Shown here piece after piece: positions 4,699 through 61,673 of a stretch of 64,000 nt of DNA (its first letter is position 1; each line of letters opens with the position of its first letter). Both the position numbers and the translations under genes were made by a program. The stretch lies in the NCBI GenBank assembly GCA_011109175.1, contig RDEW01000010.1:1309238-1373237 (forward strand), written 5' to 3'. The DNA comes from Dicyema japonicum (taxonomy: Eukaryota > Animalia > Dicyemida). The notes beneath the pieces were generated by a model. That model was not told the DNA's origin. It searched no databases and saw only the letters and a list, made by a program, of their open reading frames with translations.

Positions 4699-6638
4699 AT
4701 GAACGTTGAACTTAATAAACTTATTCTTGGTTATTTAAATGGCAAATATCCTGAACAAACACGACAACTATCCAAACTAATGAACATTGTATAGCCATAA
4801 ACTAATTTTAGAACAAAAGTGACTACATGTACTCTCTCTCAAACGTGTACGACTTTTACAAACAGTTAAATGATTTATTTACATAGAACTGACAAATTAA
4901 TGTCACAAATTAAGACAGATTCTACACAATCAAAGTCTATTATTAACACAACTAAAGACTCATCCCTTAAAAAGTCAAAACAACCCAGCAAGGATGAACA
5001 ACCACCTGCTAAAGTCCATAGAAAGAAGCAAGACACTGACTCGACCATTATTGAACCAACAAGTGAGGAGTCTTCTGTCTCTATTCTTCGAAGTAAACAT
5101 CTGAAACCTCAGAGACAGGAGTTTAACAAAACTGTTAATAACGATGATAACATTTCGACTCCCTCAATTAATTCCAGAAGTATTAATGACTTCGTTCAAC
5201 AACCTCCCAAATTTGTGACCCCTAAATCTCCCAAAATCAATGTCTCCAATAAGAAGTCTACTCCTATTCCTTTAAAGTCTTCTATTGCCGATGAATCCTC
5301 TTCTGAGAGTTCGAGTGTCTCTGACTGTGTCCCCACTAAATCTGCAAAGACACCTGAAGTGACCAAACCTAACGAGGACTCGACATCTTCTGACAGTTCA
5401 AGTGACTTACAACCCTCTAATAAAAATGGAAAACATAATAAAGATGTCAAGTCCTCAGCATCAAAAACTGTAAACAAAATCCAAAACGTGACTCAATCCT
5501 TGAATGTTGTTGATGATTCTTCCTCTGAGAGTTCAAGTGACTCTGATTCTGTTCCAGTAAATTCGGCGAACGAATCAAAGACAATTGAAAAGACCAAACC
5601 TAAGGAGGATTCAACCTCTTCTGATAGTTCGAGTGATAAAGTCCCTACTTCCAATAAATTTGGAAAGTCCTCAGTATTAAAAAATGTGAAGAATAATTCC
5701 ACTGAAACAAAAAATCTTGTCGAACAATCCTCGTCTGAAAGTTCAAGTGAGTCTGATTCTGCTCCCATGAAGCCTGGAAACACATTAAAGGTTCCTCAAG
5801 TGCCAAACCTACTGAAGACTCGACATCTTCTGACAGTTCAAGTGACGGTGCTTCTAATAATAATGAGGAGTCTAATAAGTCTGTAATGTCCTCAGTGTCC
5901 AAAAATGTGAAGAAAATTAAAACAATGAGTGAACTGATGGAGATTGAAGGATCTTCATCTGACAGTTCAAGTGACTCAAATTCTGTCCCTGTTAAGTCAG
6001 GTAACACGTCAAAAACAACAGAAGTAACTAAATCTTCTATGGAATCGACCTCTTCTGATAGTTCGAGTGATGATGCTTTTAATAAAAGTGAACAAATTAA
6101 GGCTGAAAAGGCCCCATTATCAAAGACTTCCAAGAAAGTCAATAAATTATCAGAATTTACTGATAAAACTACCAAAAAGTTTAATACCCCCACTAGTGAA
6201 TCCATCAAGAGGCCAGCCAAGAAGGAATTGAAACATTCTGCCAGTAAGAAACCGACGAAAGAGGTAGAATTGTTATTTCTTAGTTTATAGGCTATAATCC
6301 CTGTAAAACTCGGTGAATCCTCGTTGTCCGACAAAGTAAACAAAAAGACGGAAAAGCCATCAAAAAAAGACAAGGTGGACAATTCAGTCGATGTGGTAGA
6401 AAAATCAAGGAAGAGTCCTGTGAAAAGATTGGATGACGTGGTTATTCCCGATAACCTGAGGAATAATTCATTTGAGGCTAAATCAGGAGCGAGGGGGTCA
6501 TGGGGAGAGAAAGCAAATGATAAATTAAAGAAAGTGAAGGGGAAGGATTTCAAGAGAGAAAAGACTAAGAATAAGAAAGGGAGATATTCAGGAGGTGTAA
6601 TTGATACTTCTGTTCATTCTATTAAATTTGATGATTAA
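4699..6638 (+). CDS. NOLC1: nucleolar phosphoprotein Nopp140/SRP40-like; introns 4789-4811, 4865-4886, 6264-6290; apparent 1-nt deletion near 5800
   Basis: spliced N-terminus MNVELNKLILGYL...SLSNVYDFY (LisH-like), alternating acidic Ser-rich (SSSDSSSD) and basic repeats, and C-terminal SRP40_C motif SWGEKANDKL...KTKNKKGRYSGGVIDTSVHSIKFDD. Confidence 0.9.
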
Positions 6639-6767
6639 TTTGATTATAATTTTGTTGTCTCTTTCCCTCACATTTCCTTCAATTTTGGTCTACCTTCTCT
6701 GTTCAGAAATAAGTTTTATTAAATGTTTACCTCATTCCTCCATAATCACAAAAAGATGGAAGACAAT

Positions 6768-8300
6768 TAGTGGTTCTCAACGGGGGCGCTGGAGTTCTAA
6801 TTTTTTAGTTATAAATATTTCCATTAGGTTTTGTAAATCATTTATCACGCGCTTATCTAATGAATTCTACTTGTCTTGTGTTTACTTTTCTAAAAAAATT
6901 ATTTACTGATATTTTTATAAATAATTTCTAATTGTGTGATAAAAAAGTAAAACGACGTATAAAAAAGTTAAGGGAAGACATGAAAATTCGCTTTATTGAT
7001 TTAGAAAATTTGAAATTTTTTAGTTGATATTTTTAATCCATTTGAAGCTGAAAACGTTAATATCTCCAGAAATAATAGAAAATTTATTAAATCTAAAATA
7101 TGACTTTGAAGCAAATATGGATATCAACAATTCTGGATTACTCAGAAAATTTATCCTCAATTGTCGAATGAAATCGAATCACTTATAATAGCATTTCCTC
7201 CAACATATCAAGTCGAAAGAGAATTTAGTGCAGTCTCTAATATTTTGACCAAAAAAAGAAATAAATTACAAATTATGACTAGCGGAGATTTGAGACTAAG
7301 TCTGTCAGCTATGGAAGCTGACATAAAGGGATTGATAAATTCTCATCAAATACAACTACGCGACTGATTCGCGTTCTATCCCATTGTAGTCGAGACAACT
7401 AGAGGAATAAGTGGGAAATCCTTCGCTTCCTAAAGAAACATAAACGCCCAACTACACTAAAAAACCACGACGCATGTGAGACCCGGTGGCCTCTCCAGTT
7501 AATCTCTGTTGAAATCGTGAGAGGTAACGCAACGTCGGTAATGTCGGCGGGAACAACTTTGGCAGGACGCACTCTCGTGTTCCTCCATGGGGACCTTTTT
7601 GGACGATGACTGCATTCGGATTGGAACCGCACAGCGCTTGGGAGTTGATGCATGCGTCGAACACTAATGTCGTTTTAAAGGGATCGTCGATACCAAAGGG
7701 CTGCATCCGCTTTCGTGCAAGAGGAGTGCGGGTAGAACACCCCGTACGCTGCTATGAACAACATTATCATGCGTCTTCCCGGCAGTGATGGAGCCCGTGG
7801 GATTGGACTCCGGAGACGGGAAAAGACCGGATGGGCTAACAATCTTTCCGTTCATTGATGGAAAATCTCTCGTAAAGGACTGCACTGTTGTGGATTCTTT
7901 CCCGAACTAGATGATGCTAAGCTCGGCGCAGTCTGCTGGTACGGCAGCCGATCTGGCCGAGAAAATCAAGATTAAAATTATGGTGAAATTGGAGATCGCT
8001 TTCGTTTTGTGCTGGTGGTAATCGAACGGCGGGAAGTTTCACAGCCTCTTTCCTGAAGGAAATTGGTCTTTATAAAAAAGATTGTTAAATAAAACGTGTT
8101 ATAACTAAGAAAAAAAATTAAGTGGTTCTTAACTAATTTGAGTTAACATTGCACTCTATTGATGGCAAAACAGTTTCTACATAAAATTTGAGAAAAATGA
8201 CCAAATAAATTTTCAATTGGAGAAATTAAATCTTACGGGGGTGCTGAAAAGCTTCAAAATTGTATCAAAAGGGGGCGCTGACTTAAAAGGTTAACCACTG
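6768..8300 (+). mobile_element. hAT (Buster/Charlie-like) DNA transposon relic with a nested CRE fragment
   Basis: left end tagtggttctcaac; right end reads cagtggttaacc on the minus strand; transposase C-terminus FPPTYQVEREFSAV..ILTKKRNKL..GDLRL at 7161-7367; no TSD found. Confidence 0.7.
7370..8060 (+). mobile_element. CRE-clade LINE fragment (RT C-terminus to RLE) nested in the hAT relic
   Basis: GLHPLSCKRSAGR and GKRPDGLTIFPF motifs, with frameshifts. Confidence 0.8.
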
Positions 8301-8420
8301 GTATATCTGAAATGAATTTGTTGACTAGTACATCTCACTCATTGTGGGACAAGTATACTAATATTCTACTATAAACACTCCCCTTATATAAGAAAACACT
8401 GACAAACAATTAATATGAGA

Positions 8421-10124
8421 TTAAAGATGACCACTTAAATCATTAAATCTGCACATTGGAGTACTCCTTATATTATTAAGTCCAACACGATGTCCCACCA
8501 AATCCCTTATATTAGTCATTTCATATAAAATCATGGTTGGTCTCTCCAATGAAATCCCCCATGCAATACAATTCACATTATCTGGGAATCCCATTGGTGA
8601 CAATACCTCCCTTCTGATTACTCCACTGTTCCCTATCTCCACCAACTTGTTTAATTCTACAATAACACAACACCAACGTTTATGGTAGTGGAATATCTCC
8701 ATACTTGGTTCCGTATACGGATTATAGGCAGCCTTAAACCGCAGATCCGTTATCCCTAAACTCATTCAAACTCAACAACCCAGCTTATTAAAGAAAACGG
8801 TCACTAATCCCATCAAATCTGAGAGAGATATATCATAATCGATCACAGATCCCTCAATTTGGTGGAATTCTGCCAAATGTGTCGCATCCACTGCTTCATT
8901 ACGGAAAACACGGTCGATCGAAAAATACTTCATAGGTTTAAACTCATTCTGGGCCAGTTTATACAACATCTTGGCAGTTGTAGCTGTCGTGTGGGTCCTT
9001 AAAATGTTCTTCTTCGCCTCCTTGTAATGCCAGTCCGACTGATATCTCATAATAACCCGAGTGCCTCACCCAGACGACCCACTACCTCCAGACATATGCA
9101 TCTCCCTCACCTTCTCGCAGTACTCCTTCTCTCTAAGCGAAGATTCCGAGGGGTTTGAAAGGAAGAAGGTATCGTGCATGTCACGTGCGGGGTGCTTCTG
9201 AGGCTGAAAGAGCGCGTCAAAGTTCCAGAAAGCTCTCAACGTAATTGTCGGTTTCCATTTCCTGAAAACTCACAAATTAGCCTAATGGTACCCCATTTCG
9301 AAGAAGATCTGCCTAATAGCACTTTTCACTTTCATCAAAGGGTGTAGGCAACCCACTTGTGGTGGTACCCCGAGTGAGGAAAAATTGAATGGTTTCAGAT
9401 TAGCAATTTTCCACGAATCACTATAATATAACCAAAGAGATCCTACTCTGCAATCATAGAGGTCGTCAAATCAGTCTGCTGCTTAGAAACACACGTTCTA
9501 AAATCTGGTCCACGTGTCAAGAGATAGTAGCTCACTTTACTACAGATTAGTTTAACACGTGCTTTTTAGTGACAAGTTTCCGTTTAATCAGTTCAGGAAG
9601 CACGGAAGCGTCGTGACAGGCCTTAGATGACTGAATGTCTCGTAGAAGAGCAACTGTAGTGTCCTCAATTTTATCAACATTTGTGAGGAAACACGTGTCC
9701 CCGTCACATTTCTCAACTTTGACCCATCCAAGGGAAATTGCGTTGTTTAAGCCAATCAAGGCGTTCGGAAAGGCATTCTTAGTGTGAAATTAAAACTACT
9801 TCAATCATTACCCTCGTTATTTTGGGCTGGCATTTCAGAAGTGAAAAGACACGTGCTTCAAGTGTACCTTCATTGATAGTCTCTAGACCATGGTCGGTGA
9901 GCTTGATTTCTATGTCTGATTTTAATTCAAAATTTATAATCTTTGTAAGAATATAAACAAACCTGCGAGTCTATGGAGGATATGCTTTTGATTGCTCCAA
10001 CTATCTTTTGATGGTCAAAATTGAGCTGAGAGGCTAATTTTATGGAAGATAATGCTCCCTCGTTGTTTGACAGGTAATTTAGTAAGTCACTACATATGTC
10101 TAATGACGACTTTAATCCATTCAT
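8421..10124 (-). CDS. FARSA: phenylalanyl-tRNA synthetase alpha subunit; 9 exons; introns 9941-9962, 9778-9799, 9540-9562 (GC-AG), 9421-9446, 9269-9291, 9046-9069, 8756-8779, 8657-8677; apparent 2-nt deletion near 9231
   Basis: motifs [69 protein letters not shown] and [11 protein letters not shown]; the spliced product is collinear with eukaryotic FARSA. Confidence 0.95.
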
Positions 10125-10247
10125 TTGTGCCACGTTAGTTTCTACGAGAAGCAATAAATAAATTTGAAATTAATATTGCATCATTTAATTAATAAAATCT
10201 AATTATATTTTATTAAATCAAATAAAAAAAAGGACAAAACATTAGTT

Positions 10248-10410
10248 AGCTGTCGCCCTCACTGCGTGGCTGTCCCTCTCAGAATTGCGAGCGAAATTCA
10301 TCAAACAGCCAGCGGCGTTCGCGGAGATTTCCAGTGCATGAGGTGATCCGGTTTCCAAGACGTCCGAAAAACTATACTGTTGAGGGGAGTAGGATCCGGA
10401 AGTCTCCATA
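10248..10410 (-). mobile_element. CRE LINE 3' end, near-identical to 52008-52172
   Basis: direct nucleotide match over about 160 bp to the 3' end of the full-length CRE. Confidence 0.9.
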
Positions 10411-10469
10411 GCAAAATCTAATTTATAAATTAAATAAGAATAGTCAGGATGAGAAATTTGTTGCTGAGA

Positions 10470-11440
10470 AAAGCTATCTTCTTCAACCCCTTTTGAGGAG
10501 AGCCCTGTGAATTATCCACAATACGAACCTTGAATACGGTACTCCAACCCATCTCTTTATTGGTGATGGACTCAATAAATCATCGACTGGGATCCAACAA
10601 TGTGATCTATTGTCCGCTTCTTTTTGATTTGGCAGTTGATGAGGCTGCCATTTAGACGATGCTACGATCCTTGGATCATCTGAGTCGTTTATGAAAAGTC
10701 TAGGAATACTTCTTTCCATTCTTAGCAGTTATGGAATCAACATTAAAGCGCGACAATTTGAAATTTGTAATCTGGAACTTTCGCAAGATGAATTATTTAA
10801 ATCACTATGCAGGTCTTTTCTCCCTGATACAGCTATTACCAATGTGTAACATTTTATGATATTGGGATCACCTACTTCCACGGGAATTATTGGAAATTAG
10901 TGGAGTCACTGTTAGTAGACGAGCTTGATCCACACATTCGTTTTTTCTTTTGAAGAATTATCTTTTCCTTCCAAGATTAATGTTTTTTGACGTTCCTCTC
11001 TTTGTTACCTCTTTTCGGAATGCCTGGAGAATTTAAATATTCTTATCGCCAAGTCTATTGAATAAATTGTGAATATATAGTTCTATAAAATTCGATTGAT
11101 GCAAGCATTCTTACCCTTCAGATTTGGGGCATCTGCCTAACTTCTCTCGTGGACGTTTCATGGCATCCTTCATGTCCTCTTTATCAAGATGGCATTTCTC
11201 ATCCGGACCATTCTTAGAGATTTAGCAAATCCGCTCTGGAGGACAAAATTGCTGATTGGTTGAAGAATTGGTCAGTGGCTTTTAAAGAAACCCCTTTTGA
11301 TATACACCGACTGAGGAACTGGACCAGCATTATGTACGAGAATACTCATTCAACCCTTTTGGACATGAACGACTTGTAGCGTCGGTTCCATCACCGTCAA
11401 TTGGTTCATTTCTGAAACAGAACGAATAGGATATCAATCC
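10470..11440 (+). mobile_element. degenerate CRE LINE RT region
   Basis: YGTPTHLFIGDG..SSTGIQQ.D.L and LDDATILG motifs, as in the CRE RT. Confidence 0.7.
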
Positions 11441-11499
11441 GTCTCTGGATCGACTTGTGCCAGTCTCATTACTTGATTATCTCTTAATCTTTGTCTAGT

Positions 11500-12250
11500 G
11501 GTTCTTTAACATGTTTACTTGGTCAAACAGAATCACATCCGACCCTTAATAAGGATGGGAATTAATCTTAGGATTGAGTGAACAGCCTTTACAATGTCAA
11601 CATTCTAAGGTCGTTTAATTTGGTAGGCAATATACGGTTAAGCTTTTCTGTGTTGGAAGGGATGAGGATTGAGTTGAGTCAGTTAAATGAGCTTTTCTAA
11701 GTTTATGTAGAGACTCTTATCGTTCTTAAAGAAACCATTTCCTATAGCATATATCAATCGACACAAAATCATATTGGATCTAAAAAATGACAATTCACAG
11801 GTTTTCGCCACAGAAAAGTACGTGTCAGTTCCAGTTTACGTCCACAGAGTCATGTACATCAAATTTTGAAGTTTCTCCACACTTGATTTTTGATTCATTA
11901 TGGGGTCTGTTTGTTTGGTCAATGAGGTAGCACACTATGCCTCTTCCTTGCGAAGAGGCATGTTGAATAGCAATATTTTGAGTCTAAGTCACTTTTTGGT
12001 AGTTTTGAGAAAAGTCTGAACCAGATTATTGTAAAAATATGGTCACTGATTTATTAAAAGCTGATATTAAATTGTATAAGCTTGATCTACCATCCAATCA
12101 TTTAATAATCTACTTAATATGCTCCATGTCTTATCGCAGAAGCGAATATTGAATTAACTATTACTCTCTTACCTGCAGATTACGTAGTCCATTTGGTTAG
12201 AGTCCCATGATGACTTTTTCTCTACTATCCACATGGTGATGTGCTAATAC
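11500..12250 (-). mobile_element. very degenerate LINE RT relic
   Basis: fragmentary AFxKISD-like motif on the minus strand; many stops. Confidence 0.3.
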
Positions 12251-14243: not shown

Positions 14244-14540
14244 GCTAAAGCATTTTAATTTAAACACAAATTCTTAAATATATGGATTGCCGCATTTCCA
14301 ATGAGTTTTTTGCATAATATCGTTGATTTCCATGAAGACTTTTTACATGTCACTGGTTTTCTTCAAGAGTGTTACTCATTCTTGTATTTAATTTACTACA
14401 ATAAAGTGATTAAAAAAAAAAATAATAAATTTTATAAAATTTTAATTAAATTAAATTTTAATAATTTTTATATAAATTATGTATTTATATAAAATATTTA
14501 TCATTCATAAAATATATAAAAATAAATATAAATCCCATTG

Positions 14541-15561
14541 ATGAACTTTATAATCACAAGTTTGTTATATTAAATTTTTAGCAATTGTGCTGTCCTTAAG
14601 TATTATAGCAGTTGTTAACACTTTTACTATTAAAATATCAAATGCGACCGTTCCAACGTGGAAAATTATTATACATGACGAGTTATCCCTGTTATTTTCC
14701 GGAATCATTAACTTGAGACTGATGTACGATGAAAATGTAAGCAAATATTATTATAGTAGGATCAAGTTATTAATTTCGATGACTCAGACGTCGAGTATAG
14801 TAATTTTGGAAATGGAGTACTTGTCTTAAAATTCATCGTTGAAAATAAACTCGTTGGGTTTAGAATTAGAATTACTGATAATACGACTTTTGTGGATAAC
14901 ATTTATGTCGTCGTTAGGGGTTTAGTGTTGGTTGAAAGTAGGGGATTTTATTCGGCAATCTTCTACTGACCTAACTGAAAGTTTCGACATTGGAAATTCT
15001 TATCAATGCAATTATTTAAAACACCAGTTTAGGGAACATTTTATTCTCAACGTGCTTTACTTAAAGTTGCAAGTGTTTCAAACCCTTGAAATTTCATCAT
15101 TTTCCGAGCAAGGTTATTCCTATAATTATTTCGAGCTGATAATTGCAGTTCTGTATTATCGAGTGATGAACCTATTGAACCAATAACTGGTACCTAAAAT
15201 TTATTTTAATTATATTTTTTTATTTGTAGAAAACACAACTCCTACTATAACTTCTCCCACGACTTCAACAGAAAGTAAGATATCTTTATGATTAATCAAT
15301 TATTGATTGTTACCTTCACTCATAGAATTGTCAACTACGACTTCTCCCATTACCACAACTCTTCCTTTGACTGAAGGTAAAATTTTTAATTTTATAAATA
15401 ATTATTATTATTTTATTTAAAGATTCAATCAACACAGGTTCAAATAGTTCTAAGTGATAGTAAGCACTCATTCTCGTAAATTAGCTACTTCCTCTGAAAC
15501 TCGTCCTTTTGAAGTAAGTTTCTTGATGCTTGCTTGGATGTTAGTTGTCATATTAATTTAA
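14541..15561 (+). CDS. LAMP-like domain surface glycoprotein with Ser/Thr-rich stalk and GPI-type C-terminus (about 256 aa, 9 exons)
   Basis: 8 GT-AG introns (14560-14581, 14737-14759, 14920-14941, 15113-15135, 15190-15229, 15275-15325, 15377-15422, 15438-15460) give one open frame: signal peptide, GNSYQC...LKLQVF...F..ADNC (LAMP-like), Thr/Pro stalk, hydrophobic end FLMLAWMLVVILI*. Confidence 0.75.
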
Positions 15562-19829: not shown

Positions 19830-22132
19830 TCATTTAATACTTTTTAACTTTTCGTCCAATTTATCCAGTGATTCCAACAAACGGTTCTCCTCTATTGAAA
19901 GAACTGATGGATCTGACTAATTAAACAATAATAACTGGTTTGTGGAGAAGATGCGGTACTCACAAGTCTGTTCATCAAACTCATAGATAGATTGTCGTAG
20001 TTTACGTACTTTTCGGCTGCATTGAAGAAGGCTATACTGTCCAATGCTACTTAATCTCATATTCAACTACTTGGGAGGGAATTGACTCTTGTATTCGATT
20101 TCTTTGGAATAGACGATGACTTGGGAGGATTAACCAAGTAATTGAGTGAATGAGATGATCCATGTCTTTAATTGTATACCTGTATTACCTTCCACTCATT
20201 GTACAGGCAGGTCGTTTGTCAGAGGTTGGACTCGTTCTATTAAATACAGCTGTTTGGGGACGTCTCTCACTAACTTCTCTCCCTGATAGAAGGCTTCCAT
20301 CGAAATCAACGAGGTTAGGCATCCTCAATTGCTGGTTCTCATACAGTGGGTTGAGGAATGGTTTCTTGTCTATTATCAGAGGCACGTGGAATGGGATTTC
20401 TGTAACATCAACTACATTCCTTTACTTTTATATTTTTCTCTATAAGTTTGCACTTGTTTCACTTCTTCCTTGGTTTGTTGTTCCATGGTATCTACATTTT
20501 CTGATGGTTCTAGTAAATGTTGAGCTTTTAGTAATTATACATTTACTTGTTTGTAATATATTTTTTGATTGGACACGTGGAGGATGCTGATCCGCAAATC
20601 GAACAGATTTGACCTTCAATATTACAATAGTGGATACGTTCTCCTCAATGGTGGTCTTTGAACGGACTTTCATTACTTCAATGCTGTCGAATATAACTGT
20701 TTTGGACTTTTTAAACTGTCCTGGTGATTTTTTTAAGATTCCTTTTATGATTTTACTACTCTGATTCTTTCAAGAATATTCATTACCTGCTCAGTCGTAT
20801 TGCTCTTTGGATAATGTAGTCGAGGACTGAGGAATGAGTTATCACAAATGCCAAATTCTTTATCGGGAACATTTTCTTCCAATTTTGGCTGTGTGTAGCT
20901 CTTTGTGAGACCAGTCTTTGGTTTATAAAACTTGTTTTGAGTTGTCGTTGGCTGAGTTTTTGACAGATCGGAAGACGGAATTACAAGATCAATTGATATG
21001 TCCTCGGGGATTTCTGTTATCAGTTCTGGCATCTTAGAAACATTTTTCGTGGGCCTTGATGACTTTGGTCTCATTATTATATTTTTAACTTCTTCCTTAA
21101 CAGTTTGTGGAATTTCAGACGTAGTTTTGATCAAATCGTTGGGATTCGATGACTTTGCCTTTTCATTCATAAGATGCGATGTCTCTGTTTTTTGATTACT
21201 GCAATCCTCGGGGCATGCTCGTTGAGTAACCGTGGTTGATTGAGGATGAGAAGTAATGAGTAACTGAGGACGTTGAAACATAGTTTGACTCAACGGACTT
21301 CGGGAATATGTTGATAGCTGATGATTTTTAAACTGTGGTTCACTTGCATCTGTTTTTCTCGTATTTTCTTTTAAAATATCGAATGTATCCTTTGGAGGTT
21401 GAAACACAGGAGATCTGATGATATGCGTGTTGGTCCTCATTGTAGGTTCAGGAGTACTCCTATATCTCTTATCTTCCCAATCAGTTTTATTTCTCCTTAA
21501 TCCGTTGGTTACTTCTTCTCGAATTTGTGCAATAGGACTATGGTGAAATGATCTTGTAGATCTTTCACTCCCACATGATGAGGCCGAGGTTATTCTATAA
21601 ACGTCATATTTTGCTGATTTGTCTGTAATACTAAACCAATCAGTACTGCTGGTATTCTGAATTGGAATGGAATGTGAGGCCGAGGATATTTGACGTTGTG
21701 TATTAATCTTCATCATTCTTTGGGAATAAATCGATTTCAAATGCACTAAAATAATACTTTTGGAAAATCATTACGGAGCCTGGATGACGGCGTTTGTTGC
21801 CGTTTCTTAACGTACGTGGCCCTTTGGTACTTTTCCGTGATCTCCTGAATACGTTGGTGACGTTCTGCCAGGACCTTCTTTCTGTACTCTTCTTCCTCGG
21901 CTTGTTGTCGGAGTTTCTTTTCTTCGTAATTTCTACAATTATATTCCATTAAATTAAAATTATGTTAACGTTTAATACTTTTGCCGTCTCCGCGTTTCCA
22001 ACTCATTGCGGTGGTCAAATCTCAGTGGAACACTTTGTGGGATCTCCCTTTGATTACTCCCATAGAAATGTCTCTCAATGTTCTCTCTAAGCAAATAACA
22101 TTAAACACTACAAATAGGACATTTTACATCAT
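19830..22132 (-). CDS. CEP126: CEP126/KIAA1377-like centrosomal/ciliary protein (multi-exon; internal exon boundaries only partly resolved)
   Basis: N-terminal coiled coil ETRRRQKNYEEKK...ERHQRIQEITEKYQRA and C-terminal SVLSIEENRLLESLDKLDEKL resemble the two conserved CEP126 ends as recalled; introns 22087-22127, 21933-21978, 21746-21774. Confidence 0.6.
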
Positions 22133-22540: not shown

Positions 22541-23443
22541 ATGGATTATCCACACAATTATGATCTCGACAATGGTAACAAGCCGGAAAACCAATTCTCC
22601 AGCCAATATGGAAATCCAAAGTTATTTTACAACAATTTCTTTTACCCATCTGAACCCCCAATAAATAATGATGATGTATTCGGACTCATCCGCAACCAAG
22701 ATTACTACCCTAGACTGTATGAGATCCCACATGGGGGAGGGGAGGACTATTGGAATTCGTACCAAGTAAATGAAATAAATAATTTTAACTTTTTGTGTCA
22801 CACAAAACCACAAATGGAAGATCAAAAGTTCAACATTGTAACACTGTGCAGTGATAAAAATACTTGCAATGAGGAATATGTTAAAATCACCTCAGAAGAA
22901 CTTATTGAGTTTGCAAACAAATTCAAACAAATCAGAATTAGAAATGGATACACTCAGGCTGACGTGGGGAACTCATTGGGGAATCTCTATGGAACCTTCC
23001 TCTCCCAGACGACCGTGTGTCGTTTCGAATCCCTGCAACTCTCCTCAAAGAATATGTGTAAACTGAAACCCCTAATGGAAAAGTGGATAAAGGAAATCAC
23101 GTTCAATAATGTTGATTTTAATGGATCAGAAAAACAGTTTATATTGGGAAGTAAACGGAAAAAGAGGACTCCGATCGACAGTTCCGTGAAATATATGCTT
23201 GAAAAGTACTTCTCTCAAAATCAAAAGCCTGGATCGTTGATTATCCGCCAGATTGCTAATACCTTAAAACTCGACAAGGATGTAATTCGAGTCTGGTTTT
23301 GTAATCGTCGACAGAAAGAGAAGAGAAACTTAGGATACAACCATTCCTTACCGGGCGAAGGGAATTTTTCCTTGGACAATCCCTTCAGTGAAACCAGGGA
23401 GGATCCCTTATATTACGGAATGAATGGTAGTCGACATGTTTAA
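22541..23443 (+). CDS. POU3F: POU-domain transcription factor, class III-like, apparently intronless (300 aa)
   Basis: POU-specific domain (FANKFKQIRI..GYTQADVG...SQTTVCRFESLQLS.KNMCKLKPLMEKW), about 17-aa linker, homeodomain KRKKRT...VWFCNRRQKEKR. Confidence 0.9.
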   Translation: MDYPHNYDLDNGNKPENQFSSQYGNPKLFYNNFFYPSEPPINNDDVFGLIRNQDYYPRLYEIPHGGGEDYWNSYQVNEINNFNFLCHTKPQMEDQKFNIVTLCSDKNTCNEEYVKITSEELIEFANKFKQIRIRNGYTQADVGNSLGNLYGTFLSQTTVCRFESLQLSSKNMCKLKPLMEKWIKEITFNNVDFNGSEKQFILGSKRKKRTPIDSSVKYMLEKYFSQNQKPGSLIIRQIANTLKLDKDVIRVWFCNRRQKEKRNLGYNHSLPGEGNFSLDNPFSETREDPLYYGMNGSRHV

Positions 23444-41170: not shown

Positions 41171-41735
41171 ATGTCATTCTCATCGTTTTGGAAAAGCTCA
41201 GTAAAAGAAACTTACAGAATATTTGACGTTGTTGAACGGAATTTTAGTTCAATCTTAACATCTGAGGCTTTGGTAATCAAATTATTAACAAACAGGAAAA
41301 ACTAAACAACGACAAACGCGTGCGACTTCTCTCCCGTTCAAGCGGTATGTTCTTGAGAATAATAAGGACTGATAATGCTGGACTTGCCATTGATTTGACG
41401 GTAGAAGAGAAGGACGCTGTTTTGTGGGAGGTCATCAACTTTGGAAGAAATGTGGTGGCTTTACATAACAACAGCAACTATTTGTGTATGAGAGAGGGAT
41501 CCCTGATTGTGATAAACTTTGTAATTTTTGATTACTCACGCTTTAGGGTGGTGAATGTCGAATACCCCCGTCGTGTATGTTTTTGGGCAGATCTACTAGT
41601 GGGAAGTTTGTGTCATTCGAGAATGAAGGATACAAGAAATCATTCATGGGAGTACTTCCTCATGGACAGTTGAAAAATGGATTTGCTGGGCATAAAGACG
41701 ACGCTGATTGTCACTTTTCTGTTATTTCCGAATAA
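41171..41735 (+). CDS. fibroblast growth factor, FGF8/17/18-like; introns 41273-41295 and 41509(or 41521)-41546
   Basis: spliced product RVRLLSRSSG...EVINFGRNV...YLCMREGSLI...SCMF...FENEGY..FMG..HGQLKNG...CHF aligns with the FGF core; the second intron is at the conserved FGF position after YLCM..GxL. Confidence 0.8.
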
Positions 41736-51974: not shown

Positions 51975-54900
51975 TATTTATTAATTTAAACAATAGAAGT
52001 CAGGTACTTGCCGCCCTCACCGCGTGGCTGTTCCCTCTCAAAATTGCGAGCGAAATTCGCTCAAATAGCCAGCGGCGTTCGCGGAGATCTCCAGTGCATG
52101 AGGTGATCCGGTTTCCAAGACGTCCGAAAAACTCGAGTGTAGAGGGGGAGTAGGATCCGGAAGTCTCCATAGCAAGGGGAACAAATTTGACATCATCGGG
52201 AAGGTCGGCGTATTTAACGAGTTTGGCCTTCTCCGCCTTTACGGATGCTGAACAGGCCCTTGTAGCACTCTCGTGAAGATTTTTCTGGGCGAACGTGTCT
52301 GTACATGTCACATCCCAAACCAGTGGTTTCCCGGCCTCAAATGGAAATATGGTCATCCCGTCCGGTCGTTTCCCGTCACTTCTGCATAACCCGACCGGTT
52401 CAAGAATGGCCGAGTATCCAGCAGCATCCATAGCTCGCCTGACAATTTCATTCAGAGCCTTGTGCCTTGGGGATCTGCCAGCGCTCCTCCTGCAGGCGAG
52501 AGGGTGCAGGCCATAGCAGTCTATCAGGATGCCACATCGGCACGGGTGAGGTACACATACTTTTAGTCCCAGCCGCAGAGAGATACCAGTTCTAACGCAT
52601 TCATCATCCAGAAAAGTGCCCAAAGCTCCATTGGGATGGCGTTTAGCCAAGCTCCGCTCTCAGGGGAAGCCCCCGAAAGCAAACAAGCGCGTCGGTGCTG
52701 ATTGGCAGATTCTAGTAGGAGTCCAAATGATTTCCAGCATAATAAGTTGTCCAGGTTTCGCTGGCGATCTTGGGAAGGAGGCAGGGGGAGGTTGGTGGCA
52801 TTCCAGGCTTCTCGTGCGTGGATTATCTCTTGGTCAGTTGAGAATTCGGGTGGGGAGTGTAGAATCCTCCTGACCAAAGGTTCGCAGGCCGTGAGTGATG
52901 ATAAATGAGCGGGAAGTGAGACGTCCAAAGTTCGACGGATTCCAAGACCCCCGAATCTAACTGGGAGTGTAGCCTGCATCCATGTATCATCGTCGAATCG
53001 GACATTAAATATTTGCTCCGTCGAGCTGAGGAGAGACAAATCAAAATTCTCGAGCAGCTCCAGTTGAGAATAATATGGAGCTGTCCTTAGTAGATAGGAG
53101 ATTCTCTGGATGTTGAGACTTCTTTTCAATAGGAATAGTGCTGTGTGCAAGTCCAGCAGCTGTAATCTTTCCAGCGAATCGCATAGGAGTCGTTTTTTGT
53201 CAAGGAGGACATGCTTCATCGCATTACTAGTGATCGGGGATCCAAGAAAAATCAATTCATTTTCAGGGGTCGAAATCCCACCGGAAACAAGGAGTAAAAT
53301 TTTTGAACAATTGAAGAGAAGTCATCGTCAGCAAGACCACAGTTTGTTATTTCACATTTCGTTATATTCAACTGAAGACCCACCTCGGACAGCGCGGGGG
53401 TGAGTACTTCTAAGTCCTGGAAGACCGTTTCCGGGGGACCTCCTAAGACAGCGTCATCGAGGTACCAGATGTTGAGTGGGCATCTAGAGAGCTTCGTGAT
53501 CCTCTCAATGCCGAGGGAGAACAGCAGTGGTCCGAGGGGGTCGCCCTGTTGAACACCTGAGGACGATGGAACTATGAAATCCCCGTGCAATAGTGATGAA
53601 GGTTTTCCGTATGAATAATTGACCAGTTCAAATATGTACGGACATCTTTCCTTGCAGGCCTCCAGAATGCAGTCTCTTCTTAAGCTGTTAAAAGCGTTCT
53701 TGATGTCCAGTTTTACCATAATGTGCCTTTTAAAGTCTTGAATGCTGCTGTTCCTGAATCTTCTGACGGAGTGAACGGCTGCCTCACATCCAAGACGAAC
53801 TCCGACTCCAACTTGACTGGGAGGTAAGGATTTTGACAAGATTGACGTAGAAAATCTGGAAGCAATCTTGGCTGCTAGTCTTCTGAAAGTGAATCCGACC
53901 GCGATCGGGCGGATTCCACCTCCCTTCTTGTCGACGGCAATCAGACTAGCCGAAAACAGGATATGGCGTATCAAATCAGGCAAATGTCCAGATAATATCC
54001 TGTTCATAAGAGAAGTGAGTGAGTATGAAAGACGACTTGCTTGGTCTCCAATAGTCGGTGAAATAAGGTCTTTAAGATGGCCGGGCCTTAAGCCATCGAG
54101 ACCTCCACAGCTACTTGGTGCAAAGTTCCATAACGCCGTGATGACATCCTCAGGCGACGTGGTCAATGGGGGCGAGCAATGGCGTAGGTCATTCGGAGAG
54201 GGTGGATGTTTCCCCAATAGCGTCTTGTAAGTATCAATGGTTGGATTGCGTGGTCCATCTGAGAGTGAGAGGGCCTTCAATGCGGATCGGGTTCCTCCTT
54301 CAAGCAACTTCGATCGTACGGTCTTTCTTAGGCGAAGAATCTCCGTTTCCCGAGTTGAACTCCGAGTCTCAGTTGAACGGATGCAGAAGGACGTGAGGTC
54401 CGTAAAGTGAGTTCCATCCATAAATGCGCGGATGTTGTTCTTCATCTCAATCGAGAGAGACTCCTTCCCATTGCGATCTCTAGAGGAGCCAAGAGCGAAA
54501 GGAGCAAAATTAAACAAACGTATCCAGTCGTTTATAGAGTCGGAGCGGAGTGCATCGTCGATTGCTTTGGTTAAGGCTTCGGTAGCTAGGGGGCGGGCTG
54601 CTTTAGGGATCTTCACCGGGATACTCCTCGATGACCGGCGTTCATTGATAATTTTGAGCAGCGAATCTGGATCCAAATGGGAAAGGTCTGCCCCGGAGGT
54701 ACATGCACTCGCGTGACCATTAGGAAACCCCGAACCAATTCCAAGGCACGAGCGGCAGTGCCATACCCCAAGAGCACGGATAGAGGCCTGAGAGAGCTTC
54801 AAACACCCGAGGTGAAAGAAGACTCCACAGGCAGAACAAGAAATTCCAAACTTTCTCAAATTGCTCATGTTGCAGGCAGAGCAATTAGACGATGACTTTT

Positions 54901-55260
54901 CGAGTAACATTCCACTGAATCAACAATAGGCGAAAATCAAGAATAGGGGAATAATCTCAATAGGCGAAAATCAAGAATAGGAGAATAGTCTCAATAGGCG
55001 AAAATAGTCAATAAGAGTCAATCTTGGACAATTATGAGGAAAATCGAGGAAATGCAAAAGAGTGCTTTCAGAGTAACAGAGCGTCGGATTTGTGGAGATC
55101 ACCGAACCGGGCCGACACCCTCTGGAGGAGCCTATGAGACTAGACTCGAAATCACGGGTAGTTGGCCCTGAAAAATCAATCAGTCCTGTACATTCGTGCG
55201 CGAGCACGAAGGAAGAACACCGGGCAAAAATGAGATCGCTGTTAAAATGTATCGGAATCA
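51975..55260 (-). mobile_element. full-length CRE-clade non-LTR retrotransposon: PHD finger, RT, CCHC and RLE; single ORF 54910-52000 (about 970 aa) if two 1-nt deletions are restored
   Basis: C4HC3 PHD at the N-terminus; GGGIRPIAVG, KLDIKNAFN, GVQQGDPLGPLLF and WYLDD (RT); CRCG...H..C...RH and KRPDG...WDVT...ETSG (RLE). Confidence 0.92.
54924..55019 (-). repeat. 34-bp tandem repeat (2.8 copies) in the CRE 5' UTR
   Basis: caataggcgaaaatcaagaatagg(g/a)gaata(a/g)tct units start at 54924, 54958 and 54992. Confidence 0.9.
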
Positions 55261-55559
55261 CGTGATAATTATTTGGTTTTCAGTGGTCTTGGGTTGTTAA
55301 ATAAAAGAATGCTTCTCGTGGACGCTATAATCACCTTACTTTTAATGAAAAAAACTCAAATTAGAGAAGAAAGTGATGCTATTTTGTGGATTATCTATTG
55401 GAATGATGATACTCCTAATTTTAAATGACTTTAAATTCACAAAATATAATATTTCTTATGATTTAGAGTTATGTTACTAATCAGGTCAATTTTTGATGTG
55501 ATATATAAATTATCATAACTTCTCAACTCTATTAAGAACTAATGAAAATCGATAAACTA

Positions 55560-56000
55560 AAGGTTAGGGGAAGTGTCATGGAACTTATTTAACTCAATAA
55601 AATTCATAGTACCTGACATACTCGCATCTTCCATCTCAGTTAAGGGGTTGTCATAATGGCAGATATGATTAGATGGGATGCTGAATAAGTACGCGTCCCA
55701 CTCCGACCGTGGGAACTACATAAATCAGACATATCCGGGTTATTAAAAGGTTGAAGTGAAATGCTGACTAAAAAATCTGATCTCTCATGCCGAATGGTGA
55801 TATTGAAGTCCAGTAATAAGATTAGTTTATGTATGATTGTAGTTAATTGGTTCACCATGTTTTATAGCCTATAGTAATATCTATTATTTGTCAGATAGAA
55901 ATAAGGAAATGTCCAAGAATCATCTGTCTTAGGTTTTTAAAAATAAGACGGATCAAATCCATATAGAATCTTCAAAAAGGGTACAAATTATCCAACATTG
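55560..56000 (-). mobile_element. degenerate LINE RT relic
   Basis: decayed GVPQG..G.VLF-like motif. Confidence 0.35.
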
Positions 56001-56236
56001 CTATTTGAGTATAGTTTAATGGAATTTAATACATATGGAATTATTTATAAGTTTTATAAATTACTAAAATCAATATAATGACTTCTTCGATTTCCTTTAC
56101 TTCTTAGCTGAAGACGCCATTCTAAATGGGGTCAGTTTGCGCACTGCTTTATAAAAATACAATTTATTAAAAAACAGCCCACCCGATAAGTAATAGGTAA
56201 TATTTTCATTATTTAAACCTCACCTTAGGCAGAGCT

Positions 56237-58133
56237 GGTTGAGCTGGTGATGTGGCTCTATTGCACACATGTCTTTTTCGTGCTTTTCTTCGGATCTTTA
56301 ACTGTTAGCTTGTTCAATGTAAGACGATTAAAATCGGATACTAAAAGAAGAAATTTATGCGTGGATCTAGGATCGTACAAGGTAACCGTGGCGTGCTGGA
56401 GTAAAACCGAAGCATTTCAACGGACACTATAACCACGAGATTGAAGAACTATCCAAATTGCAGAGGAACCTACGTTTACAGGTCGAAACCTGTCAAAACC
56501 AGGCAAATGAACACACTCGAAGAGTCATGCGGAACCAAACCCTGTATAAAATAAAGATAAGAACGAGGGAAATAAAGGAAAATAAACTTGTTGGAATTTT
56601 AAAGAAATAGAAAGGCTCAAAAACGGAGCGCAGATGTTCAAGGCTGTTCACCTACTACATAAAAACACGCAGTCATCAAAAATCACAATACATGATCAGT
56701 TTGGAAAGTACAAAAATGAAATTTTATCGTCCATATCCAGGCACTATCAGCAGGCCTTCAATCAAAACCACGGGGAAAACATCAAACAATTCGATGGTGA
56801 AGCACGAGAACTGAATATTCCGATAACGATTCTGGAAACAAAAAAAGCCCTGGATAAACAGAACAACAATAGAGCTGCTGGCCCTGACAACATAAATGCA
56901 GAACTTCTCAAATATGACCGAGATTTCTGAGCTATTAACTGAAATAAACAACAAAACATTCAAATACAACTCACCACTGGTAATAAATTGCACTACAAAA
57001 ACCGGGCAAAGCTAAAGGCCCCTTAACGAATTTAAGACCCATCGTACTATTGACGACTCTACGCAAGACACTATCACTTATAGTGCTGAACAGGATTAGA
57101 CCTGACATCGATAACTTTCTCTTTCACAATCAAAGCGGATTCAGGTCAAAGAAATCTACAGCTGATGTGGTCTGGAGACATTTGAGACAACGTTCAGAGT
57201 ACCGCTTGTCACCGGTACTTTTTGTGACATATCTGGAGGCAGCACTCAGAGACTTCAGACTATTAATTGGCGATTTACCCTCAAACTGAAGTGATTTATG
57301 CAGATGATATCGACTATATATCCAGGGACGAGAAAACATTAAACTATATACGGACAAGGATGCCAGATGTCCTAGAAAAATGGTTCATCAAAATCAATAC
57401 GGAAGAGACGGAGACAACAACCATACGCCGTGAATTAACCCGAACTGATAAAAATGGAGATACTTTAAAAAATTGGGGTCGTTGCTCGGAGGTGCTGAGG
57501 ATATCACTAACAGGAAGATGTTGGCCGTCGCGGCCTTTAGAAAAATAGGAGTAGTCTGGAATCATCGTAAACAAATTAGCACACAATTACGTGTAAGACT
57601 ATACAATGCCTTCGTGAAACCAGTTATAATGTACAACGCTGCAACCTGGGGAGTCTCAGAAGCGGTAATGGATAAACTAGATGCATTCCATCGTAAACAA
57701 CTCCGACTGTTGCTTGGCATCAACTGGCCGAAAAAAATCAAAAACAAGAATCTATAAAAAGTATGTAATACAAGACCATTGAATCTGGATATCCTTGAAT
57801 CAAGATGGCGTCTGTTTGGTCACATCCTTCGAATGAGCCAGATGACGCCTGCTTAAATAAAGAACTATTTCTGCCCAAAAGTGAATACCTCGTTCCGTGG
57901 AAGACCTCGCATAACTTTGCACAAGGATCTGACCAATGTAAGACGAAAGCTGAAAACAGGAGATGATCTGGATACGCTCAGAATAATTACCAGTAACCGT
58001 GGAGCATGAGGAAGTTAGCTAAGAGAATTGTGGGAGAAAGAATAACCTGAAGAAAAATACGGCACAAGCGGAACCTTAATTAAATAAATTACATTTTTGG
58101 TTCTTCGAAAGTGCTATTAATAATAATAATTAT
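56237..58133 (+). mobile_element. RTE-like LINE, full span but internally deleted, with 8-bp TSD
   Basis: LFNVRRL (APE start), AAGPDNINAELLK, YADDI and RVRLYNAFVKPVIMYNAATW; (TAA)n tail; TSD gcagagct at 56229-56236 and 58134-58141. Confidence 0.85.
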
Positions 58134-58141
58134 GCAGAGCT

Positions 58142-59000
58142 CGACTTTACTTTAAGAAGTAAGAACAGTGATGTTAATTAATCCAAGGAATATCCAAGAC
58201 ATTGAAAGTGTTATTGATTTGTCGTTATTTTCTTTTTGTTTGTGTGCGAGATCCAAGAATCCAGTTACAGTGTTTAGACACTTATGGACTCACATGCCTG
58301 CTATAGATCATATACGTCTTCTAATGCCATTTTAACATGTTTTAGATATATGTTCATTATTGTTAACTAAATTGTTCGTGGCTTCCTTCTAAAAGCCCTT
58401 GAGCAGAGGAAGTATGATTTTATAGTATCGTAAGCGGGAACGGCATGATTCATCTGTAATTAGTGCCCAAATAATCCCTATTGGGTCTGTGTAATAATTG
58501 TATCCAAGTGCTCCTATTTGCAAGCTGTGTATAAGTCTTAGTTATTGATCATTGTAGTGTATCCTAGTAGATTCCTTAGTTGTTTTCTGTGAACAGCATT
58601 CAAGTTATCAACACATGAATGAGTTAGTCCCCATTCTATTATGAAATCATCATTGGAAGTTATAATTGACTTGTACTCATGATTAATCAATTTATATTGG
58701 TTAATCAAATCAATAAAGCATAAAAATAAACGGTTGCATCCCTAGTCTCAAATAGTACATCTAATTGCCTGTATGATTAGATCAAGTCATTGAATACTTA
58801 TTGTGATTATATTAAAAGTTCTTTTACTATAAGCCCAAATGGTATTATTGTTGGAAATTGAAAAGATGTTGTCCTTGGATATTAAATTGGACGTGTGGAT
58901 TGGTGTTATTTGTTCTCTTTACTTAAATTATATGGAGAACTAAGGAAAATAACTACGACCAACAAATAACTACGTCACTGACCTCTTAAAGAAATATCTG
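58142..59000 (-). mobile_element. older RTE-like LINE whose 3' UTR resembles the SINE tail; it continues at 56228-56165 on the other side of the younger insertion
   Basis: LNAVHRKQLRNLLG, GLFGH and GFRRKPRT; 3' region aligns with SINE 35670-35850. Confidence 0.65.
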
Positions 59001-60413
59001 GAACGATTTACATGGATAGTTTATAATAAAGACAGTAATGACTCCAAATCATATTGGAATGAAGATTACTTAAAAAATTATTCCACTCTAAGATGAGACA
59101 TTATGTGACATTCTAGATTGTTATAAGGCCCTACCGAAACAGCTTTGGCGTGCAAGTACACTGATTTGTCTGTATGATTAAGTTTAAGCTTTCCTGTGTG
59201 CAATAAAATCGATTGTAAAGCATTAACTTAATATATTTAAACATATTTCTTTATAAAAGGCTGCTAGATCTGCCCTGAACCCGCTTAATTTCAAAATTTT
59301 TTATGGATGAATACTCACAGTTAAAATACGATGATACATAATTGCTTTCTTATGCTGACAATGTTCTCGCCTAGAAATTGGAGTTTTCTGAAAAAACTTT
59401 GGATAAATGAACTGCGTAATGTTGAATGAGAGTTCTAATTATCGATCGAGAAACGCTATTCGTATTTCCAATCTCAAAAATTCCATTCGGATTTTAACCT
59501 ACACGAGGTAAAGTCTGCACATTTTCTTATTTCAAAGTAACAAATCAATGTAATGCAATCAAATCCACCTAATTAAGGAAAGAAACACTAATTTAGATTA
59601 ATTCATTAAATAGTCAATAAAACTAGAATTATGGTGATTTAATATTAAGGTATTTGCAGAGGCGATTCCATCTTAACTCCAAATTAGCCAAGGCCAGAGA
59701 CTCCAAATATTTTAAATGTCATATTTCTTGACATTTTAAGGCTTTTGATAGTTTAAACTACGAATCTATGTATGCTGGTTGAAGACGATCATTGAATCGT
59801 TCCTCAGTGGAATGGTACTTTGTTAAAAACAAGAAGTCGATCGGAGAGGTAGTAAAGAAAAGGATGAGGGAACATAAAAAGAAATGGGATCCTTTATTTT
59901 TACATAACAGTCAAAATGAAATATGAGGATGAGGAATGAGTTCGCAGGACTTGTGCTGCAAGAAGCGTCAACAAAAATACCCTTTTAAAATCTTGAGAGT
60001 TAATCCCTAATCATATATTAGAACTGACATGTGTCCCCTCATGAAAGAGAAAAAGTGGTCATTTTGATGAGAGAGAAAGTTTACAATAAACTCTTCTAAG
60101 ACTAATTCATAAGTAGTAGTAACATAAGGTTAATTTAATTAACCAACAAACTATAAACAAAACAGCACTTCATAACAATTGGACTCCCATGGAGATAATT
60201 CAATATTGTTTAAATTATGAGAGAGTATCGATTTAAAGTCATATGGCTGCCACTCAAATTAAAATTCAAGCAAATAATTATATAATAAAATTAATAATTT
60301 AAAAATAAAATATTTTTATTTAAAAATATTAATTATTTAATCTAATTAAAAATTCAAATATAAATAAAATATAATAAATTTAAATAATTTATACGTATAT
60401 TGTTACTACATAA

Positions 60414-61673
60414 ATGAATTACCTTGTGAAAGAAGACATGTTCAATAATTACGACCCGTTTGACTGTAATGACCTATTCTCTGAATATAACCCATTTCAC
60501 GAGGGATATTCTGGTAAATTAAATTGTCATTCTCAGACGATTCTAATGAATTGTTTAAAAATAATTTAAAATTCGATTTTCCTGAGACATCTGCCGACAA
60601 TGGTCTTCTATACGACTTCCCTCCTCTCAGAACAAATGAGGACCCCAAAGACGACTTCCCACCTCTCAGACTAACCGAGGACCCCCAAGATTACTTCTCT
60701 CAACTCAAGACAACCGAGGACTCTGGCTTTTCTAAACTGAAAACACGTGTGAACTCTAGGGACTATAACTTTCCAATCAGAGCCACGAATGGTTCAAAGG
60801 GGAAGAACGTCTCTCATAGCAGGACAAGTGAGGACTCTAAGAATTACTTTCAACTAACAGAGGAACAGCAGGATATTTTCAATTCAATGAAACTCCCAAA
60901 TTCTGACCTACTTTTGCCTATAAGCAAGAAAACCGAGAAAATGATAGCCCAGATTAACCGAAGAATAAGAAACCGAGTTTAAATAGGCATAATTGGTAGA
61001 AATCAGCCAAACGAAGTAGGGACACTCGTAAACAGAAGCATTTGTCATTGGAAATGAGGGTGCAGGAACTTGTGAGGGAATGTGACTCTCTGAAGGATTT
61101 GGTGGACTACGAAAGGGACAAGAAAATAGAAGTTGAACTGGAAAATGATTTACTGAGGAAACAAGGAGATTATATTTTGACGAAGCTGAGACACGCCAAC
61201 GAGGACAAACAGTCATGAGTTTGGTTATTTGTAGGGATTTGTTGAGAAATATTGATGACTCCAAGAAAAGGAATTATTTCCCAACCGTTGGAAGGGTCCC
61301 TTACATGATATTCATTATTTTTGTGTCCTTCTATTTGATAAAGAGTTGGTCATTCACTGGAGTTCCCCAGTTGCTGACGTCTGATGGGCTTCCTTTGGGG
61401 AGTGACGAAGGTTCGGATGTAAAGTTCGACATTTCCGAGTCTTTTGGAAAGACATTCAATGAGAGTTTGTTGAAGGAACACAACTATGGGATATATTCCT
61501 TCTCCAAACGAGACACCACGTGTGACTATTCTACCAAAATCAGGGATTCTGTTGAGAATTACGATACTGGGAGTTTTGGGTTTACTGAAAGTGATGACAG
61601 TTCTCCCAAAAGACTGGCCTTTGATAATTATTATGGACAGTCAGATTTTTTATATTCTCCACTAAAGTCGTAA
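60414..61673 (+). CDS. membrane-tethered bZIP transcription factor, CREB3/OASIS/ATF6-like; introns 60514-60536, 60977-60999 and 61212-61234 (all 23 nt)
   Basis: spliced basic region RRIRNRKSAKRSRDTRKQK, zipper LEMRVQEL..ECDSL, then TM YMIFIIFVSFYLI and a lumenal tail. Confidence 0.8.
60614..60870 (+). repeat. about 39-bp (13-aa) degenerate coding tandem repeat in the bZIP N-terminus
   Basis: DFPPLRTNEDPKD / DFPPLRLTEDPQD / YFSQLKTTEDSG and further diverged units. Confidence 0.85.

Follow-up and report, generated by a model that had tools for sequence, protein, structure and literature searches.

A first-AG regularity at 21 nucleotides from the donor in the micro-introns of a Dicyema japonicum locus

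How is a 3' splice site chosen in an intron that is barely longer than 20 nucleotides (nt)? The question is raised by a 64,000-nt stretch of Dicyema japonicum DNA (the window), which has 36% G+C and is a mosaic of debris from long interspersed nuclear elements and reverse transcriptases (LINE/RT) plus a few host genes with very small introns. An initial annotation of this DNA listed 32 introns and proposed that each ends at the first AG at least 21 nt from the donor, regardless of the base that precedes the AG (the -3 base). Our re-derivation covered 28 introns from six genes (NOLC1-like, FARSA, LAMP-like, MAP7-like, FGF and bZIP). The counts below refer, unless another number is given, to a tabulated set of 25 D. 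japonicum introns and eight introns from a second dicyemid (33 curated introns). Positions within an intron are counted from the donor, and an AG is placed by the position at which it ends.

Acceptor position relative to the donor

Every one of the 25 D. japonicum introns and of the eight from the second species has as its acceptor the earliest AG to end at or beyond position 21. A threshold of 21 is the sole value that fits all 33 introns; in D. japonicum, a threshold of 20 fits 22 of the 25 and a threshold of 22 fits 24. The proposed rule holds throughout the tabulated set, and its possible break, at 20047-20070, is taken up below. The limiting cases lie directly on either side of the threshold. 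The shortest of the 25 introns is 21 nt, as the initial annotation had it, and the latest-placed internal AG ends at position 20, in three introns. These three are the skipped TAGs that had been singled out earlier (6264-6290, 14737-14759 and 22087-22127), and all are present. Skipped AGs as a whole end at positions 4-20. Intron lengths are 21 (one intron), 22 (five), 23 (ten), 24 (two), 26, 27, 40, 41, 46 (two) and 51 nt, which makes 20 introns of 21-27 nt and five of 40-51 nt, with a median of 23 nt.

Sequencing data bracket the threshold from both sides. Reads and contigs from four runs were examined over 4400-10399. Runs X1-X3 are DNA and cover introns and intergenic DNA alike. Run X5, from a separate study, was taken as RNA-like, its type being inferred from exon-only coverage; this coverage is limited to 4922-6601 and 8479-8656, and most FARSA introns lie outside it. 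One X5 contig of 1,600 nt covers 4922-6547 and omits exactly the 27 nt at 6264-6290, so that an AG ending at position 20 goes unused; this is the one such skip seen in the RNA-like contigs. Another stops at 8656 and continues with nine bases matching 8678-8686, which leaves out the 21 nt of FARSA intron 8. That intron is invisible to open reading frame (ORF) logic, because it is in frame and stop-free. The second species lacks it and reads HYHKQL(D/N)KLVEIGNSG without interruption, confirming the 21-nt intron.

Internal AGs are distributed unevenly. The stretches ahead of position 21 hold 20 AGs in 424 positions, and the 137 positions from there up to the acceptor hold none. Shuffling gave P = 0.013 for the whole interior and P = 0.024 for the zone from position 21 on; most of the signal is due to the five long AT-rich introns (P = 0.04). 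We regard the statistical support for the rule as modest. In the 33 curated introns, internal AGs concentrate at positions 4-10 (14 of them) and 19-20 (five), with just two at 11-18. The AG-poor positions 11-18 may be the branch-site region or may be due to chance.

The other splicing signals are loose. Donors are GT in 27 of the 28 D. japonicum introns and GC in one (9540-9562), all 28 end in AG, and A or T stands third in 23 of 25. The -3 base in D. japonicum is T (17), A (4), G (3) or C (1), and acceptors of the form RAG (R, purine) make up 28%. In the second species it is C (5), T (2) or A (1). Acceptors other than YAG (Y, pyrimidine) are clearly used. The six named in the initial annotation are all there (GAG at 9269, 9046 and 15135; AAG at 9941, 9778 and 15422), and an AAG at 20166 brings the number to seven. 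The claim that the rule works regardless of the -3 base was too strong, given the preference for T in D. japonicum and for C or T in seven of the eight second-species introns, and the TAG favored at 20050/20047. Neither the universality of the rule nor the irrelevance of the -3 base is established.

In a different account of the same numbers, there is a soft optimum rather than a threshold: an AG about 22-24 nt from the donor would be preferred, AGs that lie close together would be decided by the -3 base (Y over R), and the rule would be an approximation. Lengths do not decay from 21 but form a sharp peak at 22-23 nt, which holds 15 of the 25 introns, and 68% of the D. japonicum acceptors have T at -3. 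Cross-species alignment also favors TAG in the AAG/TAG pair at 20050/20047, and competition between close AGs that is set by the preceding base is known in mammals (PMC1431707). However, the GAG at 9269 is used despite a CAG 7 nt downstream, the GAG at 15135 is used despite a CAG 13 nt downstream, and no AG that ends at or beyond position 21 is firmly known to be skipped. A soft optimum strikes us as unlikely.

Junctions placed by homology, by a second dicyemid and by reading frame

A second dicyemid provided an independent view of many junctions. The best FARSA match lies on a 668-kilobase (kb) contig, VCDQ01005081.1, of the octopus assembly GCA_006345805.1, and the best POU match, which carries the name of an Octopus sinensis protein, is on VCDQ01002782.1, a contig of 374 kb in the same assembly. 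Both contigs have about 35-39% G+C and the transposon families found in the window. They carry FARSA, POU and MAP7-like orthologs, and their genes have 66-82% protein identity to the conserved FARSA/POU regions of the window and the same micro-introns. We conclude that these contigs are contaminant DNA from a related dicyemid in the Octopus sinensis assembly. Where one species is intronless at a site, the junction in the other is fixed almost as it would be by complementary DNA. The second-species FARSA gene (VCDQ01005081.1:9220-10826) has six introns of 22-25 nt. It lacks D. japonicum introns 3, 6 and 8 (9540-9562, 9046-9069 and 8657-8677), and it alone has a 24-nt intron inside SLE/RPTM.

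Independently of the rule, homology or the second species settles nine junctions in FARSA and the MAP7-like gene (Table 1). For FARSA (8424-10124, minus strand), a hidden Markov model (HMM) was built from full-length members among 150 FARSA relatives, and every in-frame GT/GC-AG alternative was scored at each junction. With a 2-nt correction, the eight-intron model encodes a 501-residue protein that scores 665 bits against the HMM; a FARSA representative search gave no 100% match. At intron 2, the 17-residue spacing from EARVF to FPNA agrees with the second species, and a 34-nt version (donor 9811) was rejected as 5 bits worse. At intron 6, the residue spacing GGxGSxGYxxDW agrees with homologues.

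Intron 3 is the one with a GC donor. The 23-nt GC-AG version scores 671.1, compared with 666.7 for a 17-nt GT version and 665.2 for a 26-nt GT version. The second species has no intron here and reads continuously as KRKLVARTRVSHILVTRG, and its spacing and 'VS' residues fit the 23-nt GC-AG model alone. Both the 17-nt version and the 26-nt GT-AG version, which would skip an AAG at position 22, were rejected on the HMM score and the intronless ortholog. A second GC-AG micro-intron is likely in a filament gene of the second species (VCDQ01002782.1:12705-12729, minus strand), where the GT alternative would be 19 nt. Reconstruction of the NCBI model of the filament gene from its range and product length is ambiguous: an in-frame intron without a definite place is needed in addition to one of either 19 nt (GT) or 25 nt (GC). 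The hexamer CACGTG occurs at 20 sites in the window (5.7 expected; 0 of 100 shuffles reach 20), five of them in FARSA between 9182 and 9855, and one of these touches the GC donor of intron 3.

FARSA intron 5 is where a GAG and a nearby CAG can be compared most directly. The protein predicted with the GAG at 9269 agrees with all homologues, the next in-frame alternative is 34 bits lower, and the second species has an intron at the identical position and phase. The GAG model is open only after a 2-nt correction at 9230, where the assembly has lost an AG. With the AG restored, exon 6 reads ESSFWNFD, as in all homologues and the second species. The 30-nt version ending at the CAG at 9262 was rejected, since it is out of frame with the GAG version and is open only through the 2-nt assembly deletion. 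Once that deletion is corrected, homology bears out the earlier preference for the GAG. Further along in FARSA, X2 and X3 DNA contigs depart from the window just before 8905, within an exon, possibly because of a structural variant or a second haplotype. Loose ends of DNA read contigs occur at 7110-8290 as well as at 8905, and depth rises 10- to 200-fold over 6800-8400 and 10200-10400, suggesting repeats.

The MAP7-like gene (minus strand, ~22200 to 19830) encodes a coiled-coil protein, and its ortholog adjoins POU on VCDQ01002782.1. The intron at 21933-21978 has the position and phase of a 23-nt intron in the second species, and the two proteins align gap-free over the junction. The exons that flank 20166-20188 match a continuous second-species ORF. 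The last intron, 19913-19935, was chosen by a model restricted by the rule and gives the best alignment to the conserved C-terminus of the second species (249). A 38-nt GC version (244) and a 47-nt GT version with a textbook GTGAGT donor (236) were rejected. The rule foretold two non-obvious junctions that ORF logic had missed, the GC-AG intron at 9540-9562 and this cryptic last intron, and both were later favored by cross-species alignment. A protein search with the 340-residue MAP7-like exon returned no proteins from D. japonicum or the second species. Next to the MAP7-like gene is an intronless POU class 3 gene (22541-23443, plus strand; Pou E = 1e-29, Homeodomain E = 4e-18), and this neighborhood is kept in the second dicyemid.

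Most other junctions follow from the reading frame. In the NOLC1-like gene, intron 1 is forced because exon 1 meets a stop at once, and the spliced product has a LisH-like N-terminus. A protein search with the C-terminal exon of this gene also returned nothing from D. japonicum or the second species. The ORFs at 4870-5886 and 5757-6287 are joined by a C that the assembly lacks after 5802, and not by an intron; this gap and the one at 9230 both shift the reading frame. The eight LAMP-like introns rest on frame and stop codons only; in 14737-14759, for example, the exon would open with an in-frame stop if splicing took the TAG at position 20. The bZIP solutions are essentially unique. The FGF gene (41171-41735) was located through a rule-based model plus Pfam, in which exon 3 gives a weak FGF match (E = 4.6e-4) that falls short of the curated cut-off; a PROSITE-style regular expression missed the gene. 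Its second intron had been given as 26 or 38 nt, and we recovered both versions, with a single acceptor. Pfam scans of about 40 ORF pieces from the window identified mostly LINE/RT debris.

Table 1. Introns and assembly errors in the window, by gene
Feature	Positions	Strand	Length (nt)	Remarks
NOLC1-like intron 1	4789-4811	+	23	TAG acceptor; AG ending at position 6 skipped
NOLC1-like intron 2	4865-4886	+	22	forced by reading frame
Assembly error, NOLC1 coding exon	after 5802			missing C; inserted by all four runs
NOLC1-like intron 3	6264-6290	+	27	TAG at position 20 skipped, TAG at 27 used
FARSA intron 1	9941-9962	-	22	AAG acceptor; best HMM score; position common to second species
FARSA intron 2	9778-9799	-	22	AAG acceptor; HMM +5 bits over 34-nt version
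FARSA intron 3	9540-9562	-	23	GC-AG; donor abuts CACGTG palindrome
FARSA intron 4	9421-9446	-	26	leads on HMM score by 21 bits; second species shares position and phase
FARSA intron 5	9269-9291	-	23	GAG acceptor; AG at position 10 skipped; CAG 9262 (position 30) unused
Assembly error, FARSA exon 6	after 9230			missing AG; inserted by X3 DNA contig
FARSA intron 6	9046-9069	-	24	GAG acceptor; best HMM score by 12 bits; no intron in second species
FARSA intron 7	8756-8779	-	24	GAG at position 19 skipped; best HMM score; same position in second species
FARSA intron 8	8657-8677	-	21	GT...TAG; shortest seen; in frame, stop-free
LAMP-like intron	14560-14581	+	22	
LAMP-like intron	14737-14759	+	23	TAG at position 20 skipped
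LAMP-like intron	14920-14941	+	22	AG at position 19 skipped
LAMP-like intron	15113-15135	+	23	GAG acceptor; CAG 13 nt downstream
LAMP-like intron	15190-15229	+	40	
LAMP-like intron	15275-15325	+	51	
LAMP-like intron	15377-15422	+	46	AAG acceptor
LAMP-like intron	15438-15460	+	23	AGs at positions 10 and 17 skipped
MAP7-like 5' intron	22087-22127	-	41	TAG at position 20 skipped; forced by reading frame
MAP7-like intron	21933-21978	-	46	no internal AG
MAP7-like intron	20166-20188	-	23	AAG acceptor; sole GT/GC-AG solution joining both frames
MAP7-like intron, candidate exception	20047-20070	-	24	TAG acceptor; AAG ends exactly at position 21
MAP7-like last intron	19913-19935	-	23	TAG at position 19 skipped, CAG at 23 used
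FGF intron	41273-41295	+	23	
FGF second intron	41509-41546 or 41521-41546	+	38 or 26	one acceptor; no internal AG either way
bZIP intron	60514-60536	+	23	frame-forced, alternatives enumerated
bZIP intron	60977-60999	+	23	frame-forced, alternatives enumerated
bZIP intron	61212-61234	+	23	frame-forced, alternatives enumerated

Several observations weigh against a strict rule or against the mechanism proposed below. The most specific is in the MAP7-like gene at 20047-20070. With splicing at the TAG at position 24, the protein reads LPTLDSIA, exactly as in the second species, where the intron of the same phase is 25 nt long and has no other AG. The 21-nt alternatives that obey the rule, 20050-20070 and 20047-20067, each open a one-residue gap and score 10-15 lower. 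The alignment favors the TAG over the AAG at position 21, and this intron is a possible exception. The pair at 20050/20047 may be a case of NAGNAG-type competition (two acceptors in tandem) in which TAG beats AAG. In the same gene, at ~20400-20550, no single-intron solution obeys the rule, although two-intron solutions with a small exon do. The 20 short introns (21-27 nt) taken alone give P = 0.32 for the AG-free zone. A search for a branch-point motif in 28 short introns, aligned at either the 5' or the 3' end, found none that stands out. RNA support covers only two introns (6264-6290 and 8657-8677).

Could the regularity be an artefact of model building and small numbers? This would be so if the shortest frame-restoring GT-AG had been chosen each time, and if short introns leave little room for a second AG. 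The P value for the short introns indicates that a missing extra AG is unremarkable there, and 16 of the 25 tabulated introns plus the two FGF introns rest on reading frame alone. Assembly indels such as those at 5802 and 9230 can mimic or distort introns, and an unconstrained gene finder gave many spurious short 'introns'. This finder, which used codon usage and dynamic programming, did not discriminate, whether or not it was given the rule. It chained transposon debris and invented 'introns' of 11-20 nt, and its total score, scanned against the threshold, showed no peak. One of its products, a 26-nt 'intron' at 5747-5772, is false, as the X5 contig shows no junction near there. In contrast, both limiting cases are present in RNA-like contigs, the nine junctions described above do not depend on the rule, and all introns together give shuffle P values of 0.013-0.024. 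We find it very improbable that the regularity is an artefact.

What might set the boundary

We lean towards the view that these are ordinary U2-type GT(GC)-AG introns squeezed near the smallest size that can be spliced, and that their acceptors are chosen by a compressed form of branch-point-to-AG scanning. The donor and the branch point would be separated by about 14-17 nt. Once the first catalytic step is over, the spliceosome would take the first AG beyond the branch point that it can physically reach. An AG could not be docked, and would be skipped, if it were upstream of the branch point or no more than about 5 nt from it. If the distance from donor to branch point is minimal and nearly constant, then the DNA would read as 'first AG ending at or after 21'. 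Such introns would be too short to hold a polypyrimidine tract; the -3 base would therefore be weakly constrained, and GAG and AAG acceptors could work. Here we infer the position of the branch point, the steric explanation, and a selection that would keep positions from 21 on free of AG. The sole internal A of the RNA-supported 21-nt intron is at position 15; if the branch point of that intron is an A, the distance from donor to branch would be 14 nt and that from branch to AG 6 nt.

A more radical possibility is a true donor-anchored ruler, in which the acceptor is measured from the 5' splice site with little role for the branch-point sequence or for the AG itself. The boundary between positions 20 and 21, counted from the donor, is very sharp, and a branch-point motif is undetectable both here and in earlier work (PMC2483917). 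However, no known spliceosome works in this way, and an equally sharp boundary is expected with a branch point at a fixed minimal distance from the donor. In addition, the 40-51-nt introns also end at the first AG, which fits scanning better than measuring. We consider such a ruler unlikely. Its fullest form is just as doubtful: a physical ruler anchored at the 5' splice site would place the cut about 21-23 nt away, at whichever acceptable dinucleotide comes first, without a branch-point sequence, a polypyrimidine tract or U2AF-type recognition, and would tolerate ends other than AG, such as TG. If it did exist, it would be a distance-measuring definition of splice sites that is known in no animal. 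On sequence alone, a ruler that starts at the donor looks the same as one that starts at the branch point.

Compressed scanning, the reading we prefer, accounts for the pattern with known parts. With the donor-to-branch distance compressed, classical scanning would set a sharp boundary at a countable distance from the donor; AGs before that boundary would be skipped, and the zone after it would be free of AG. The initial annotation attributed acceptor choice to a hard minimum distance plus scanning. As a description, this covers every firmly placed intron; it is no alternative to known mechanisms. The initial annotation also suggested a simplified spliceosome, which might have lost U2AF, SF1, Slu7 or Prp18. 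The window contains none of the genes for these factors, and we found no report of their loss in Dicyema in the literature.

The rule is a useful and testable regularity. If it holds genome-wide, a donor and the first AG at least 21 nt away would predict nearly every acceptor, and dicyemid annotation would improve. If compressed scanning is correct, these introns would provide a natural system for studying minimal spliceosome geometry, in which donor and branch are about 14-15 nt apart and the AG follows the branch by about 6 nt. Current models of splicing are not overturned, as compressed branch-point scanning would predict the rule.

Relation to known splicing systems

Short introns and weak splice motifs are already known in Dicyema, and we did not find an explicit 21-nt rule in the literature searched. 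The D. japonicum genome is 67.5 megabases with 36.7% G+C and a heterozygosity of 1.24% (PMC6736024). A related Dicyema has a median intron of about 27 nt (PMC6543705), and no branch-point motif emerged in earlier work on dicyemid introns (PMC2483917). In D. japonicum, the donor motif is cut to 'GTa' and the acceptor to 'AG', and weak A residues sit further from the AG in longer introns (PMC13644364). The parts available to us of the reports on dicyemid micro-introns (Ogino 2010; Lu 2019, PMC6736024; Zverkov 2019, PMC6543705; Hadjez 2026, PMC13644364) describe medians of about 26-27 nt and GTa/AG motifs, which the window introns fit (median 23 nt). Those parts give length distributions and logos, and they contain no explicit 21-nt rule, skipped AGs at positions 19-20 or AG-free zone.

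Other lineages also have introns close to a size limit. Introns of ciliates and of the Bigelowiella nucleomorph (Stentor, 15-16 nt; Paramecium, ~25 nt; nucleomorph, 18-21 nt) likewise have a hard lower limit and weak internal signals (PMC2483917, PMC13644364). As compared from the literature, the lineage and the limit differ, and the window has introns of 40-51 nt alongside the short ones, with the first-AG pattern in both. There is also a resemblance to NAGNAG tandem acceptors, as the AGs at 20050/20047 (AAG/TAG) and at 14756/14759 (TAG/TAG) are 3 nt apart. However, at 14756/14759 only the downstream TAG can serve, because the upstream TAG (position 20) gives an in-frame stop.

The closest relative of the pattern is scanning from the branch point to the AG, with its AG exclusion zone (Smith et al. 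1989, 1993; Gooding et al. 2006, PMC1431707). In that system a linear search runs from the branch point to the first AG, and AGs too near the branch point are bypassed (PMC1431707). The window introns likewise have an AG-free stretch up to the acceptor, and they would also use the first AG past a reference point and bypass AGs too near to it. They differ in that most are 21-27 nt long, the implied distance from branch to AG is about 6-8 nt, RAG acceptors reach 28%, and counting from the donor locates the boundary. We read the regularity as a compressed variant of this known mechanism and not as a new one.

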